This document shows positions 36,761 through 62,964 of a stretch of 64,000 nucleotides of DNA, one piece after another. The notes under the pieces are model-generated. The model made no database searches. It saw only the letters and a program-made list of their open reading frames with translations, and had not been told where the DNA came from. Every line of letters begins with the position of its first letter. The first letter of the stretch is position 1. The stretch lies in the sequence record ON631220.1. One strand, written 5' to 3'. Made by a program: the position numbers and the translations under genes.

Positions 36761-37241
36761 CGTTATGTTCAGTATCAGTCGTTAATTGATACCCGCACCA
36801 TTACGTGCAGCTCTAGCTCTCGCTAGAAGACCAGACTATATCTTCACCTACAGCATTATCTGTTTAGGTGCTCTCCATTTCGGATCACTTGATCCTACGG
36901 GGCGCAACCCCCTAGTCGTTGAACGTTCCACATATTACAGTTAAGTAACTTAGCGGCTTCGCTGCTGATTGGCCCTACCTTAAGTTTGTCAAGCATTCAT
37001 TATCTACTTTCGTGATAATTGTAGCACTTAAGTCTAACAGGAGTTTCCAGCAATTAGAAGAGTAAAACATATTCATTTCGGAATATGTGGACTTATGTAT
37101 TTTACTGCATAATCTCTAAAAATATAACCATGTTCAGAGTAGGGAACTTTCTTAAATCAAAGATTTTCAATAGATTTATTTAACATGGTTATTACCCTAT
37201 TAATTTTCTATAGGATAACCAGATATACAGTACTACAGTTA
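36761..37241 (-). mobile_element. Self-splicing group I intron (IA2-like), 481 nt, no ORF
   Basis: On the minus strand: 5' splice site after U (GAT^TAA), P AATTGCTGGAAA (37044-37055), Q AATCAGCAGC (36961-36970), R GTTCAACGACTAGG (36911-36924), S GAAGATATAGTCTGG (36831-36845), P7 GACTA/TAGTC, and terminal G before TTTGACGGGGAC. Confidence 0.95.
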
Positions 37242-60106: not shown

Positions 60107-62218
60107 TTAAAACCGCATATATGCGGGCTGATATGGTTTATACATACGTGTATCAAAGTCATTAAAATCAATTGCGATATCATACTTCTCAAATGATTCT
60201 TTTAGCATCTGATAAATGATTTTATTTTCATCAAAATTATTATTTTTATCAACATAACTTTCTAATGACTCTGTGATCTCAAATGGAGATTTAATACCCA
60301 TAATAGCTTCAACCATTGCCTGACTCCATTTTAGAATGTCATCTGACCTTGTTGAGATATTCGGTTCATCTTCTGTATCGAGAGTACATTGATATACGAC
60401 TGTTTGTGAATCCTGACCTTTACGGTAAATTCGAGCAATAGCTTGTTCTAGAATGTAATGCCTAAACGGTGAATTAATTGTCACCATAGTATCAGCCATC
60501 GTCATACGGACCGCTGTTGAAAGGGAAGCATATGTAGCTACCAATGGATTTAATTTAGGGTCTTTCTCAAATCTACTGATTATTTGAGGTAAATTGTCAT
60601 TGGTTTTACCATACACCACCGCCGGATGCATACCTAATTTATTGGTGTACTTATCAACAGTATCAACAACCTCAACAAACGATGTAAATGCAATCGTTTT
60701 CTTCATAGTTGATTCAGTGATACCAACCCAGTCAATATACGGTACCATGTCCACATGGCACTGAATGCGTTTAGCACCTAAAACCCTTCCCAAACATTCA
60801 CCTTGTATCTTTAGCATAACGTATTTTATAACTGATTTAATATCTCTAAAAGCAGCTATTTCATTACGAGGTAAAGTTGGCTCTATAAACATTTTTTCAT
60901 ATTGGTTAGATTCTTTAATTTCTTCACCAATGTATCGCGGGTCTTGATTCTTCTGAATTATTTTAATCAAATTCTTATAGCGAGCGAAACCATCTTTCTG
61001 CGCCTGGGTCTTAAGAGAGTTCTCGTGTATCGCCATTAGTTTAGCCCAATACTTCTCATCTTCTGGTCGGCGCGCAGCATAGAACTTTACACGTTCTCTA
61101 ATAAAAGCTTCACAATCACGTTTAATGGCATTAAGAGTATACTGTGATCCATTTGGTATCTTGATACGATACGCTTTTATCCTCGGTGGTAAAACCTCAG
61201 TATCTTTCTTTTCAATGACGTACGCAATTAACCCAAAGCGATGTTGGACAATATCTAATCCTTTCTGTGTCTCTTTTCCAAATGCTTTCTTAAAACGTTC
61301 TTCAACCTCATTGGTGAAGAGATCGTCTAATACTCTTAATGCACTTACTAATTCAGAACCAAGTGCTTTAACAGGGGTACCTGACGCTAATAATCTGTTA
61401 TTAGAGTTAGACATAAAACATATTTGCTGGAACTTAAGAGATTGTGCAGAATTAGGATCGTTCATATTGTGTGATTCATCCAGAATCACCGTAATGTTCT
61501 TACCTTTGAATATACCGCTTCTTAATAGATCAATTATTTTATCTTGCGCCTGGTAATGGGATATAAGTATTCTTTGACCGTTGTAGGCTTTATCATCAAT
61601 GGTCGACCATACTTTTTGTCTTTTCTTATACATCTCAATAATAGATGGCTTCCATATTAGATCAATAGACTTCTTTTCACAAACAACTATAATGATATCC
61701 GACTCAACCATTTCAGCAATAGCCATCGTCATGAATGTCTTACCAGTACCAGGTTTACCTGCAACAATATCACCACGTAAACCATACTGGTCAATTCGAT
61801 AATTATAATTTTCAAAATAAGCTTTTTGAGACTCATCTGGTGTAAATGTCAATTTGTCTAACATCTTGAAATTGAGTCTACCTGGTACAGAGTTGGTATC
61901 TACAGGACGAGTATTTTTTAACCAGGTATATTGAAGCATTGCTTCACGGATGGCATTAACAGTTTTAATAGAGATGTATCTACTTCTATAATTCTTTACT
62001 GCTTCTAGCATGTAATATATTTCAGGAGCAAAGAATTTATAAAATGAAATACTACGACGACTAACCGTGTTAAATAACTGCGTAGCTAATTTAGTGGTTC
62101 GCCAATACTTGTTAATATCTCTAATGAATGCAGCACCATCAAAACCACTGATGATAATTTCTTGATCAGTTTCAGTAATTGATAGCGAGCCCATTAGCTT
62201 CCTAAATGAGTCTATCAT
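60107..62218 (-). CDS. SF2 (SNF2/DEAD-like) helicase
   Basis: Walker A GKPGTGKT, DESH, SGTP and motif VI QAIARIYRKGQ. Confidence 0.9.
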   Translation of the reverse strand: MIDSFRKLMGSLSITETDQEIIISGFDGAAFIRDINKYWRTTKLATQLFNTVSRRSISFYKFFAPEIYYMLEAVKNYRSRYISIKTVNAIREAMLQYTWLKNTRPVDTNSVPGRLNFKMLDKLTFTPDESQKAYFENYNYRIDQYGLRGDIVAGKPGTGKTFMTMAIAEMVESDIIIVVCEKKSIDLIWKPSIIEMYKKRQKVWSTIDDKAYNGQRILISHYQAQDKIIDLLRSGIFKGKNITVILDESHNMNDPNSAQSLKFQQICFMSNSNNRLLASGTPVKALGSELVSALRVLDDLFTNEVEERFKKAFGKETQKGLDIVQHRFGLIAYVIEKKDTEVLPPRIKAYRIKIPNGSQYTLNAIKRDCEAFIRERVKFYAARRPEDEKYWAKLMAIHENSLKTQAQKDGFARYKNLIKIIQKNQDPRYIGEEIKESNQYEKMFIEPTLPRNEIAAFRDIKSVIKYVMLKIQGECLGRVLGAKRIQCHVDMVPYIDWVGITESTMKKTIAFTSFVEVVDTVDKYTNKLGMHPAVVYGKTNDNLPQIISRFEKDPKLNPLVATYASLSTAVRMTMADTMVTINSPFRHYILEQAIARIYRKGQDSQTVVYQCTLDTEDEPNISTRSDDILKWSQAMVEAIMGIKSPFEITESLESYVDKNNNFDENKIIYQMLKESFEKYDIAIDFNDFDTRMYKPYQPAYMRF

Positions 62219-62283
62219 TGCATTTTTCCTTAAGGGGTATGTAAATATAACTCTAAGTCATAAGATTAGCTAACGAATAAAAA

Positions 62284-62450
62284 TACGCACAGTGCAATGA
62301 TATAGAGCAAGGCAGTTTGCGTAAAACGCACTGCACTTTAAGGGGGTGATCCAGTCGTAAATAAACCGGGGTACTAAAGTATCGTCAGGAACGACACGAA
62401 CCCCAACTACGGTGCCTTGCTACTCACCGACCTCTAGATAGGGGTCGGAC
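62284..62450. ncRNA. Putative structured non-coding RNA
   Basis: About 50% GC by manual count in an AT-rich intergenic space; no ORF; multiple complementary segments. Confidence 0.5.
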
Positions 62451-62461
62451 CTATTACATTA

Positions 62462-62487
62462 AAGGAGCCCACCAGGGGCTCCTTTAT
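62462..62487 (+). terminator. Terminator
   Basis: AAGGAGCCCC-ACCA-GGGGCTCCTT-TAT. Confidence 0.75.
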
Positions 62488-62499
62488 GCCATTCATTAT

Positions 62500-62523
62500 A
62501 AATTAATTTAAATCTATATTACA
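62500..62523 (+). promoter_or_regulatory. phiKZ-type early promoter
   Basis: TAAATTAATTTAAATC-TATATTAC upstream of 62569. Confidence 0.65.
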
Positions 62524-62568
62524 GGATTACCATAAAGATATTTATCCTTTTATAATGAGGAAAAGATT

Positions 62569-62964
62569 ATGTCCGATATTAATAGCACCAATGTAACAGA
62601 TGAATTAGTACCTTATTTTCCATCGGCGGATGCCATTACTAGTTCTACTATTAGGGATGAAGTAATTCCTAATATTTTGTTATTCTACAAGAATGCTTTT
62701 AGTGACTTCCAACACGTTAGTAATATCACAGGTACTAACCAGATTGCATCAGGTTATTTACCAGGTGTAGGTTATTATTTCGAGTATAGTGTTACCGGTA
62801 ATGCTAATCTTATTCCACCTGAAGCAATTAAAGTATTACGTAATGTAATCACTAAAAATGGATATAAAGATGACATTACCATCACACCAAAAGGTTTTGG
62901 CCTAATCAATTGGTTCATTGTAAGAGTATACGTAGATGAGCAAATTAAGAAGACTACTCAATAA
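62569..62964 (+). CDS. Early hypothetical protein
   Basis: 131 aa; GAGGA RBS. Confidence 0.75.
   Translation: MSDINSTNVTDELVPYFPSADAITSSTIRDEVIPNILLFYKNAFSDFQHVSNITGTNQIASGYLPGVGYYFEYSVTGNANLIPPEAIKVLRNVITKNGYKDDITITPKGFGLINWFIVRVYVDEQIKKTTQ

Follow-up and report, generated by a model that had tools for sequence, protein, structure and literature searches.

Between its genes PHIKZ203 and PHIKZ204, Pseudomonas phage phiKZ carries a plus-strand structured RNA in which a segment left unpaired by the consensus structure is complementary to the 3' end of Pseudomonas 16S ribosomal RNA (rRNA). We analyzed a stretch of 64,000 nucleotides (nt) from record ON631220.1 (the window), whose source is phiKZ; a window position equals the phiKZ position minus 150,549. 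A preliminary description had flagged positions 62284-62450 as a GC-rich, multi-stem noncoding element. We find that this element is a real structured RNA of the plus strand and belongs to a new family that is catalogued in no Rfam family. The complementarity to the 16S 3' end, which is absent from that description, is the defining feature of the family. On the strength of this complementarity we lean toward a trans-acting decoy that would base-pair with the 16S 3' tail on host 30S/70S ribosomes.

A structured RNA family of jumbo phages

Diverged copies of the element were recovered from PhiPA3-like phages by sensitive blastn, at 73-85% identity over parts of its length. IMG/VR and metagenomes were scanned with the invariant strand, with gapped patterns and, later, with a pattern taken from the closing-helix sequence only. 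The family comprises at least 38 distinct sequences, nearly all of them on phage contigs of 230-317 kb. All cultured carriers are jumbo phages of Pseudomonas: the phiKZ group (47 records), the PhiPA3 group (PhiPA3, PA1C, PS119XW, phiLBG22, BRkr, HPP-Temi, phiHQ and HHBS36_1), and 201phi2-1 (homologue at about 229,020-229,200), Viktualia, Psa21 and pPa_SNUABM_DT01 (DT01), with a partial match only in D6. The members share one order of parts: AAUGAUAUAG comes first, then the closing helix and a hairpin, then the purine-rich strand, which is invariant, and a variable arm bearing a GNRA loop; AACUACGG together with the second strand of the closing helix, another hairpin and a G+C-rich stem followed by UUUAUG complete the series.

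Compared with dinucleotide shuffles, the plus strand of the element folds with z = -3.7 (1 of 200 shuffles was as good) and the minus strand with z = -2.35. A covariance model, R1, was built from nine unambiguously alignable DT01/L017-type sequences with a hand-written structure; no phiKZ-type sequence was in the seed. R1 matched the window over its full length (model positions 1-109) at 62306-62421 on the plus strand, with E = 4e-5. Full-length matches were also obtained in PhiPA3 (E = 9e-8), PA1C, L009, 201phi2-1 and other clades, and the model passed over unrelated contigs that bear only the purine-rich 16-mer. Psa21-type members were not detected with confidence (E 0.2-5). Judged by eye, they appear to belong to the family, as they share the order of closing helix P1, hairpin P2, purine-rich motif, GNRA arm, ACUACGA, hairpin P4 and terminator.

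The family was realigned to R1 with Infernal, changes at paired positions were counted, and the counts were compared with those from shuffles and from controls in which partners were slid. Standard pairs fill 90.5% of paired cells, and both partners have changed in 22 of the 27 pairs (163 cells); these numbers are somewhat inflated because the alignment was fitted to R1, although phiKZ-type rows were not used for model building. None of 500 shuffles reached any of the observed measures. Sliding the 3' partners by 1-3 columns left pairing at 29-42% and lowered the covariation score from 0.48 to 0.04-0.09. U.G and G.U pairs are frequent in the family alignment; because they fit the plus strand only and become A-C mismatches on the minus strand, they place the RNA on the plus strand. 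In plain MAFFT alignments of 23-33 members P2 and P3 were misaligned, so that RNAalifold returned P1 alone, plus a spurious pairing within the motif.

The individual helices (Table 1) are supported to different degrees. P1 has 8-9 base pairs (bp), with both-side changes at 7 of 8 pairs and 99.6% of cells paired; one pair, as an example, reads UG in seven sequences. P2 stands at the same position in every member with differing sequences and loops (UUCG, UGAU, GAAU and others), and double changes occur at all three modelled pairs. It was considered as a mimic of helix 45, and this was ruled out since its loop sequences are not conserved. An unpaired junction of about 30 nt follows P2 in the consensus structure. 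Within P3, double changes were found at 5 of 5 pairs in helix 4 and at 7 of 8 in helix 5, the apical helix measures 3-8 bp, and the apical loop, CAGGA in phiKZ, is a GNRA tetraloop in almost all relatives. The base of P3, CCG/CGG, is conserved without covariation; a P3a triplet that is always paired was ruled out, as CGR has no partner in 201phi2-1. P4 recurs with differing sequence in PhiPA3, PA1C, HPP-Temi, 201phi2-1, Psa21, L009 and L025 and is absent in DT01-type members.

Much of the preliminary description agrees with these results. There is no open reading frame (ORF) of at least 30 amino acids (aa) in 62284-62450, and the core has about 50% G+C in an AT-rich phage. The multi-stem character is borne out by the double-changed pairs and the homologues, and relatives support the proposed closing helix (62306-62314 with 62413-62421), the hairpin TGCGT-AAA-ACGCA (P2) and the strong 3' hairpin (P4, 62427-62448). 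The long arm GGGGT..ACCCC, in contrast, is an artifact of minimum-energy folding of a single sequence: GGGGU at 62343-47 lies in the invariant unpaired motif, and in the family model ACCCC pairs with a second GGGGU at 62368-72. Alternative pairings had been taken to suggest a switch. The partner sequences TACGCA (62284-89) and AGTGCA (62291-96) lie upstream of the probable start near 62305 and thus outside the predicted transcript, so a switch is not supported. Two of the analyses it had proposed were run, with compensatory changes in 22 of 27 pairs among relatives and nothing meaningful at the locus in Rfam, in agreement with its view that the element matches no known RNA class.

Specifically, no Rfam 15 family matched the locus at the gathering threshold in a covariance-model search whose set includes 6S, transfer-messenger RNA (tmRNA), RNase P, SRP, phi29 pRNA, riboswitches, ribozymes and the Weinberg/Breaker candidate motifs. 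At E up to 10 over 62100-62650, there were four chance-level matches with scores well under the threshold, none inside 62306-62452. ARAGORN found no transfer RNA (tRNA) or tmRNA anywhere in the window. A description of the RNA was not found in the phiKZ and jumbo-phage literature searched. The family is thus a new and well-supported structured RNA.

Complementarity to the 16S tail and signals for transcription

The first part of the unpaired junction strand, UAAGGGGGUGAUCCAG (62339-62354), is the reverse complement of the 16S 3' end with one G.U. In phiKZ the pairing extends to 62359 and comprises 21 contiguous pairs, 17 Watson-Crick and 4 G.U. Between 16 and 21 contiguous pairs with the 16S 3' end (median 18) can be formed by 38 of 38 distinct members. 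The family motif reads (U/C)(A/G)AGG(G/A)GGUGAUCCAG(Y..), and its segment in the junction strand is GGGGGUGAUCC. Motif nucleotide 1, opposite the terminal A1542, is variable (U in 27/38, C or G in 11/38). At the other 15 positions only the A/G opposite U1541 and U1537 varies, save for one U opposite U1541 in L071; with A or G facing U, the pair with the invariant 16S partner is kept. The canonical GGAGG is replaced by GGGGG (motif position 6) in 32 of the 38 members, so that a G.U wobble sits in mid-duplex. The GGGGG variant also removes from the motif of these members GGA/GGAG, the recognition cores of CsrA/Rsm proteins and of nucleases that cleave Shine-Dalgarno (SD) sequences.

On the rRNA side, more than 120 genomes, the majority from Pseudomonas, contain the Pseudomonas 16S end, ..GGCUGGAUCACCUCCUUA, as part of an exactly matching 68-nt string. 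This string ends ..GUAACAAGGUAGCCGUAGGGGAACCUGCGGCUGGAUCACCUCCUUA, and in P. delhiensis the Rfam model of the bacterial small-subunit rRNA (positions 1-1533) ends at the same final A. P. aeruginosa is not among the 16S matches listed, and genus-wide identity was taken as sufficient. The variant of the tail found in enterobacteria reads ..GGUUGGAUCA... Pairing of the motif with the 13-nt single-stranded 16S tail is predicted to yield about -21 kcal/mol. For comparison, the SD duplexes of 54 ORFs in the window have a median of -6 and a best value of -10.9 kcal/mol, so the predicted motif duplex is about twice as stable as the strongest of these. The 16-mer occurs once in the window, and neither a second copy nor a complement of the motif was found in these 64 kb with up to three mismatches allowed.

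The same purine-rich sequence is also used elsewhere as a ribosome-binding site: in unrelated phage contigs, TAAGGGGGTGATCCAG stands immediately 5' of an ATG. We observed AGGRGGTGATCCAG right before ATG at L007, L008, L010, L018, L021, L022, L028, L031, L036, L037, L039 and L073, with the full 16-mer in all of these loci but L073. The loci lie mostly on smaller, unrelated phage contigs and have unusually long SD sequences, with 14-16 nt complementary to 16S.

A second segment of the RNA, CUACGGUGCCUUG, is collinear with the antisense of a more internal part of 16S (Table 1), and as a consequence the P1 5' strand (CAAGGCAG) resembles 16S CAAGGUAG. This 3' core segment reads CUACGG-UGCCUUG in phiKZ and CUACGG-UACCUUG in L025. 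When its alignment was compared with shuffles, p was about 0.002-0.03 in phiKZ-type, L046-type, L071 and L038 members; the match was not significant in the DT01 subgroup by local alignment against shuffles. Read in this way, the RNA would mirror the final ~48 nt of 16S in antisense, either as a trace of its origin or as a masked second pairing site. RNAduplex applied to the whole RNA and the last 57 nt of 16S gave no usable information past the terminal helix: it permits very large internal loops, and shuffled sequences scored well too.

The element also carries the signals of a gene. The layout AAAAA..TAC..N..ATATAG is kept in PhiPA3, PA1C, HPP-Temi, Psa21, L009 and L025; phiKZ-type members have an A-rich tract and TAC ~22 nt before the first helix, and DT01-type members have TATG immediately 5' of GUACAGG. 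The phiKZ middle promoter has TACT centered 22 nt upstream of the start, with A-rich repeats before TACT (PMC8244752), and the phiKZ late-promoter sequences listed all end in TATG (supplement, bioRxiv 10.1101/2023.10.13.562163). As the upstream signals match these published middle and late promoters, we infer transcription by the non-virion RNA polymerase from ~62305. A start at ~62305-62307 would give an RNA of about 147-182 nt. The plus-strand RNA of ~250 nt proposed earlier is therefore upheld in strand and not in length, and the TATG at 62238-41 that had been suggested as its promoter is not conserved in PA1C and phiHQ.

At the other end, a plus-strand 3' end (T095) was mapped in vivo at phiKZ 213001 (+), or window 62452, by ONT-cappable-seq (supplement, bioRxiv 10.1101/2023.10.13.562163). 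In that source T095 is not predicted to be intrinsic and belongs to no transcription unit. It coincides with the foot of the P4 hairpin, 35 nt before the canonical terminator, suggesting 3' trimming or dual termination. The phiKZ terminator motif is a stem-loop followed by TTAT (PMC10914365), and all family members have a stem-loop and UUAUG(C/U)C directly after the core or after P4. With a promoter-like motif and a terminator kept in the members, and a predicted 5' end, the element is best explained as an independent gene for a stable, structured, trans-acting noncoding RNA.

The genes around the element differ among relatives. It is divergent from the helicase gene in phiKZ, PA1C, phiHQ, HPP-Temi and Psa21; in PhiPA3 it lies upstream of the helicase gene and has the same direction. 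A co-directional gene stands 3' of the element in phiKZ, Psa21, PhiPA3 and many DT01-type contigs, and the gene after it is convergent in PA1C and phiHQ. Depending on the clade, the downstream gene is a gp204 homologue, the helicase or an unrelated ORF, and in pPa_SNUABM_DT01 all annotated neighbors are hypothetical proteins, with no helicase nearby. This variation in neighbors and in relative orientation argues for a product that acts in trans.

A possible ribosome decoy and its rivals

The following course of events would account for these features. Transcription of the plus strand by the phage's non-virion RNA polymerase would begin at ~62305 and end at the phiKZ-type terminator at ~62487; the 3' end at 62452 would then arise at the P4 hairpin, either by trimming of the RNA or by termination there as well. 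P1 stacked on P2 and the GNRA-capped P3 arm would hold out the ~30-nt junction strand. This strand would pair with the single-stranded 16S tail, covering the anti-SD sequence and the nucleotides that link the tail to helix 45. By doing so, the RNA would occupy the messenger RNA (mRNA) docking site of 30S/70S ribosomes as a 'super-Shine-Dalgarno' decoy. The likeliest outcome would be that host ribosomes are reprogrammed or parked in mid or late infection, through a block of SD-led initiation or through cover of the 16S 3' end. A probable role of the structured arms is to dock on the 30S platform or to bring in a phage protein. Candidate gains for the phage are the shut-off of SD-dependent initiation, the late parking or protection of ribosomes, and the exclusion of competitors.

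Several points weigh against this proposal. Binding of the RNA to ribosomes is predicted from sequence complementarity. Pairing beyond about 9-13 nt would need the base of helix 45 to open in the mature 30S, and a block of the anti-SD would also strike phage mRNAs with ordinary SD sequences, which leaves the benefit to the phage unexplained. The motif is unpaired in the consensus structure, yet in thermodynamic folding its mean unpaired probability is only moderate (0.47 vs 0.36 elsewhere), and the minimum-energy fold of phiKZ pairs the motif GGGGU with ACCCC. Published data from infected cells do not single out the element: ONT-cappable-seq called no plus-strand start in its region and did not place it among 17 phiKZ noncoding RNA candidates (bioRxiv 10.1101/2023.10.13.562163), and Grad-seq of phiKZ infection reported only two noncoding RNA candidates, both others, from an early sample at 10 min (PMC8545117). 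We found the 16S-complementary motif in none of the 17 listed candidate sequences. Invariance of the motif is also partly a matter of ascertainment, because most members were retrieved by patterns that held part of it. A control search with a pattern from P1 sequences only (GTACAGGCAG..CGGCGCCTGTAC) recovered 12 viral and 9 metagenomic family members, and the motif was present in 21 of 21, one with the GGAGG variant, but this motif-independent control covers the DT01-type clade only. Its two remaining matches were chance matches with neither the family architecture nor the motif.

The 16S pairing could instead serve the fate of the rRNA itself, which we consider unlikely. RNase R enters at the 16S 3' end and needs a single-stranded tail. 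Once turned into a blunt duplex, the tail would be out of reach of host toxins that act there or of 3'-to-5' exonucleases, RNase R among them; alternatively, the second antisense segment would clamp the last ~45 nt of immature 16S and block 30S maturation or create a substrate for RNase III. This reading fits the first motif U of 27 of the 38 members, which pairs with A1542 and leaves no 3' overhang, as well as the 21 contiguous pairs reached in phiKZ and the collinearity of CUACGGUGCCUUG with the antisense of 16S ~1500-1513, for which a duplex was also found in PA1C. However, the DT01 subgroup has little or none of the second complementarity, whose segment is locked in P1 of the free RNA, 16S nt 1494-1513 are known from established ribosome structure to be buried in the mature 30S, and in most members the duplex, at only 17-18 bp, is short for an RNase III substrate. 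The degradation of 30S by RNase R is the subject of a structural paper (PMC10901742); no data link phiKZ infection to RNase R. A related and rather doubtful idea joins both segments in an 'anti-ribosome' class of phage RNAs, of which the element would be the founding member. Its backbone, in effect the final ~48 nt of 16S in antisense, would use the exposed anti-SD tail as a toehold. From this position the RNA would either retain the 30S as a simple decoy or open helix 45 and the top of helix 44 by strand invasion; the latter would leave small subunits of the host, or subunit precursors, remodeled, inactivated or marked. Here the motif would correspond to nt 1522/1527-1542 and the 3' segment to ~1497-1513, P3 would replace the tip of helix 45, and the 16S-like P1 5' strand would mask the second antisense segment. 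As an unrelated RNA of phage PAK_P3 carries the same motif (see below), RNA targeting of the 16S tail would then have evolved at least twice in Pseudomonas phages.

Other explanations do not involve the ribosome as a target. It is improbable that the element is an ordinary small RNA whose purine strand targets mRNAs with CCUCC/GGAUCACC, or titrates an SD-binding protein (S1, a CsrA/Rsm-type protein or a phage protein), with the 16S match as a by-product. Its own promoter-like motif, terminator and exposed strand are the architecture of a trans-acting small RNA, and in a review ChmC, a protein of jumbo phages, is stated to bind both phage mRNAs and small regulatory RNAs (PMC13282480). Yet fourteen invariant nucleotides, with flanks that preserve the pairing, are shared by phages of very different genomes, uncultured contigs among them, and of the plausible partners 16S alone should be as invariant. 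No other complementary RNA in the cell comes near the 16S tail in abundance, and the window, at three mismatches or fewer, holds no second copy or complement of the motif. A CsrA/Rsm sponge in particular was ruled out because these proteins need a GGA core, which the GGGGG variant removes in 32/38 members. We regard as very unlikely a cis-acting 5' leader of PHIKZ204, be it an attenuator, a riboswitch or a ribosome standby site, that would act on this gene by way of its terminator or its strong SD-like strand. A gene in the same direction does follow in phiKZ, Psa21, PhiPA3 and many DT01-type contigs, and many phiKZ small RNAs are products of premature termination derived from 5' untranslated regions (5'UTRs) (PMC10914365). 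Against this, the downstream gene and its orientation differ among phiKZ, PhiPA3, PA1C/phiHQ, HPP-Temi, Psa21 and DT01, and 215 nt separate the motif from the PHIKZ204 ATG further downstream. PHIKZ204 has an early-promoter-like sequence of its own, TCTATATTAC, after the terminator. No conserved terminator/antiterminator alternative was seen, no systematic test having been made; in L045 and L071 the P1 5' strand is able to pair locally instead of with the 3' strand, and the terminator has no conserved competitor.

It is less probable still that the purine strand is the SD of a tiny ORF and the transcript a small mRNA. The same 16-mer does precede ATG in unrelated phage contigs, but the element in phiKZ has no ORF of at least 30 aa, and no family member has an ATG at SD spacing (4-12 nt). 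The only start nearby, a GUG inside the motif, opens a frame of 4 codons in phiKZ and of 10 in L017 and is not conserved, and the compensatory changes are those of RNA helices. The small-ORF idea was ruled out on the absence of ORFs and the unconserved GUG frames. The minus-strand 5' leader of the helicase mRNA, which the preliminary description had offered as an alternative, has next to no chance of being correct. The element does lie upstream of the helicase start codon, and the minus strand folds somewhat better than shuffles (z = -2.35). The start of late promoter P107, at phiKZ 212808 (-) or window 62259 (bioRxiv 10.1101/2023.10.13.562163, there also attributed to Ceyssens et al. 2014), nevertheless falls in the gap that separates the element from the helicase ATG; on the minus strand this is downstream of the element, which is therefore not part of that leader. 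The PhiPA3 element has the opposite orientation relative to the helicase, plus-strand U.G pairs become A-C mismatches on the minus strand, and the terminators and promoter motifs are all on the plus strand.

Known systems, gene neighborhood and other observations

The SD elements of mRNAs have the same partner as the proposed decoy, the 16S tail, and the same core, GGAGG/GGGGG with UGAUC. The phiKZ RNA differs from them in that no start codon or ORF follows the motif and in the length of the match (16-21 nt vs 4-9). Its strand is set in a conserved three-way junction with its own promoter-like signals and terminator, and it would act in trans. The proposed logic is also that of 6S RNA, an abundant structured RNA of similar size that mimics a nucleic-acid ligand and sequesters a core machine. 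There is no kinship of sequence or structure between the two (no Rfam match): 6S is a long, mostly double-stranded rod with a central bubble resembling an open promoter, whereas the phiKZ RNA is a three-way junction with a ~30-nt single strand. The phiKZ RNA is phage-encoded, and its target would be the ribosomal anti-SD, reached by base-pairing rather than by mimicry of shape. Some phages encode bS21. In Bacteroidia, sequestration by bS21/bS18/bS6 makes the 16S tail unavailable or tunes its availability and so changes which mRNAs initiate (PMC7797042, PMC9976891); there the agent is a protein pocket, and here it would be a pairing RNA.

An 80-nt '5'UTR-derived' RNA of phage PAK_P3, detected by ONT-cappable-seq, lies upstream of the phage tRNA-Asn/Tyr/Gln cluster (bioRxiv 10.1101/2023.10.13.562163). 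This RNA (KC862299; locus L213 938-1018, genome 85937-86017 (+)) carries GAGGAGGUGAUCCAGC, which forms 16 pairs with the 16S tail, and the segment is ~89% conserved across many Pakpunavirus and Nankokuvirus phages. It does not match R1, and its size and fold differ from those of the phiKZ RNA. Some records annotate the region as tRNA-Cys, and ARAGORN finds no tRNA there. The parts of the report available to us do not discuss its 16S complementarity. The PAK_P3 RNA and the phiKZ RNA family look like convergence on the same 16S target. Other small structured transcripts of jumbo Pseudomonas phages, some of them shared across genera, come from phiKZ and 201phi2-1 (5'UTR_gp40, 3'UTR_PHIKZ298 and the small RNA upstream of gp182/gp277), and they lie at different loci from the element described here.

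We rate the element as a new RNA class whose proposed target has not been described before for a phage or bacterial small RNA and whose putative function is read from its sequence. If binding to the anti-SD proves true, this would be, to our knowledge, the first phage or bacterial noncoding RNA to act on the ribosome by pairing with rRNA, and a translational counterpart of 6S RNA. The takeover of host protein synthesis by nucleus-forming jumbo phages, in which only phage proteins have been implicated so far (PMC10914614), would gain an RNA layer as well. The RNA is a compact natural scaffold presenting a putative ribosome-binding strand, and it could become a tool to titrate or label 30S subunits. 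Whatever its function, the family provides a new structured RNA for annotating jumbo-phage genomes, and the decoy hypothesis is directly testable in the well-developed phiKZ/PAO1 system, in which antisense oligomers have been used before to knock down phiKZ mRNAs (PMC12571901).

Table 1. Features of the RNA element and its surroundings in the phiKZ window
Feature	Position	Strand	Description
PHIKZ203	60107-62218	-	SNF2/DEAD-type helicase
Late promoter P107 of helicase PHIKZ203	62259-62308	-	Start 62259; overlaps the RNA promoter region divergently
Promoter-like region	62276-62305	+	A-rich tract and TAC(G) at 62279-62287; TATAG at 62301-62305 abuts the first helix
Structured core	62306-62421	+	Three-way junction P1/P2/P3 with a long single-stranded joining segment; R1 match
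P1 closing helix, 5' strand AGCAAGGCA	62306-62314	+	Pairs with 3' strand TGCCTTGCT at 62413-62421
P2 hairpin AGU-UUGCGU-AAA-ACGCA-CU	62314-62332	+	Stacked on P1
Unpaired junction strand UAAGGGGGUGAUCCAG + UCGUA	62339-62359	+	Complementary to the last 21 nt of Pseudomonas 16S (..UGCGGCUGGAUCACCUCCUUA-3')
P3 domain	62366-62412	+	Outer helix CCG-GGGU / ACCC..CGG, internal loop with UAAAG, apical hairpin 62382-62394
Second antisense segment CUACGGUGCCUUG	62407-62419	+	Spans the junction and the P1 3' strand; collinear with antisense of 16S ~1500-1513 (CAAGGUAGCCGUAG, E. coli numbering)
P4 hairpin CCGACCUCU-AGAU-AGGGGUCGG	62427-62452	+	Helix 62427-62448, then mapped 3' end 62452
Intrinsic terminator, phiKZ type	62461-62487	+	AAAGGAGCCC-ACCA-GGGGCUCCUUU + AUGCC
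PHIKZ204	62569-62964	+	Gene 3' of the RNA element

Among the matches listed, none of 40 annotated phiKZ-type records has an annotated feature under the element. HPP-Temi (L003, 1440-1535 and 1633-1858) and pPa_SNUABM_DT01 (L041, 2530-2652) have coding sequences of ~30-48 aa, labeled 'hypothetical protein', over the RNA gene or terminator; these are probably spurious calls. The orientation of the RNA gene to the adjacent SNF2 helicase gene is reversed in PhiPA3 (L001, 1466-1800) compared with PA1C (L002, 1380-1760) and phiKZ, implying an inversion breakpoint between the RNA and the helicase. Just past the RNA terminator and upstream of PHIKZ204, the window has TCTATATTAC at 62513-62522, which we take to resemble the AT-rich core of phiKZ early promoters. 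In Psa21, L009 and L078 the terminator is likewise followed by the string TATATTAC, and L025 and L076 have closely similar strings there.

One clade of the family (L046, L047, L048, L053 and L065) is found on contigs of 94-244 kb, the near-complete ones being about the size of the phage Goslar genome. The terminator of this clade resembles an annotated Goslar terminator (93% over 29 nt), and the RNA core has no match in Goslar. In the phiKZ-like Pseudomonas phage vB_PaM_W10-2 (PP793740), two places match a 271-nt query, which may reflect a partial duplication of the locus. Elsewhere in the window, positions 36811-37135 on the minus strand hold a group I catalytic intron (Rfam RF00028, 88.4 bits, full-length model match).

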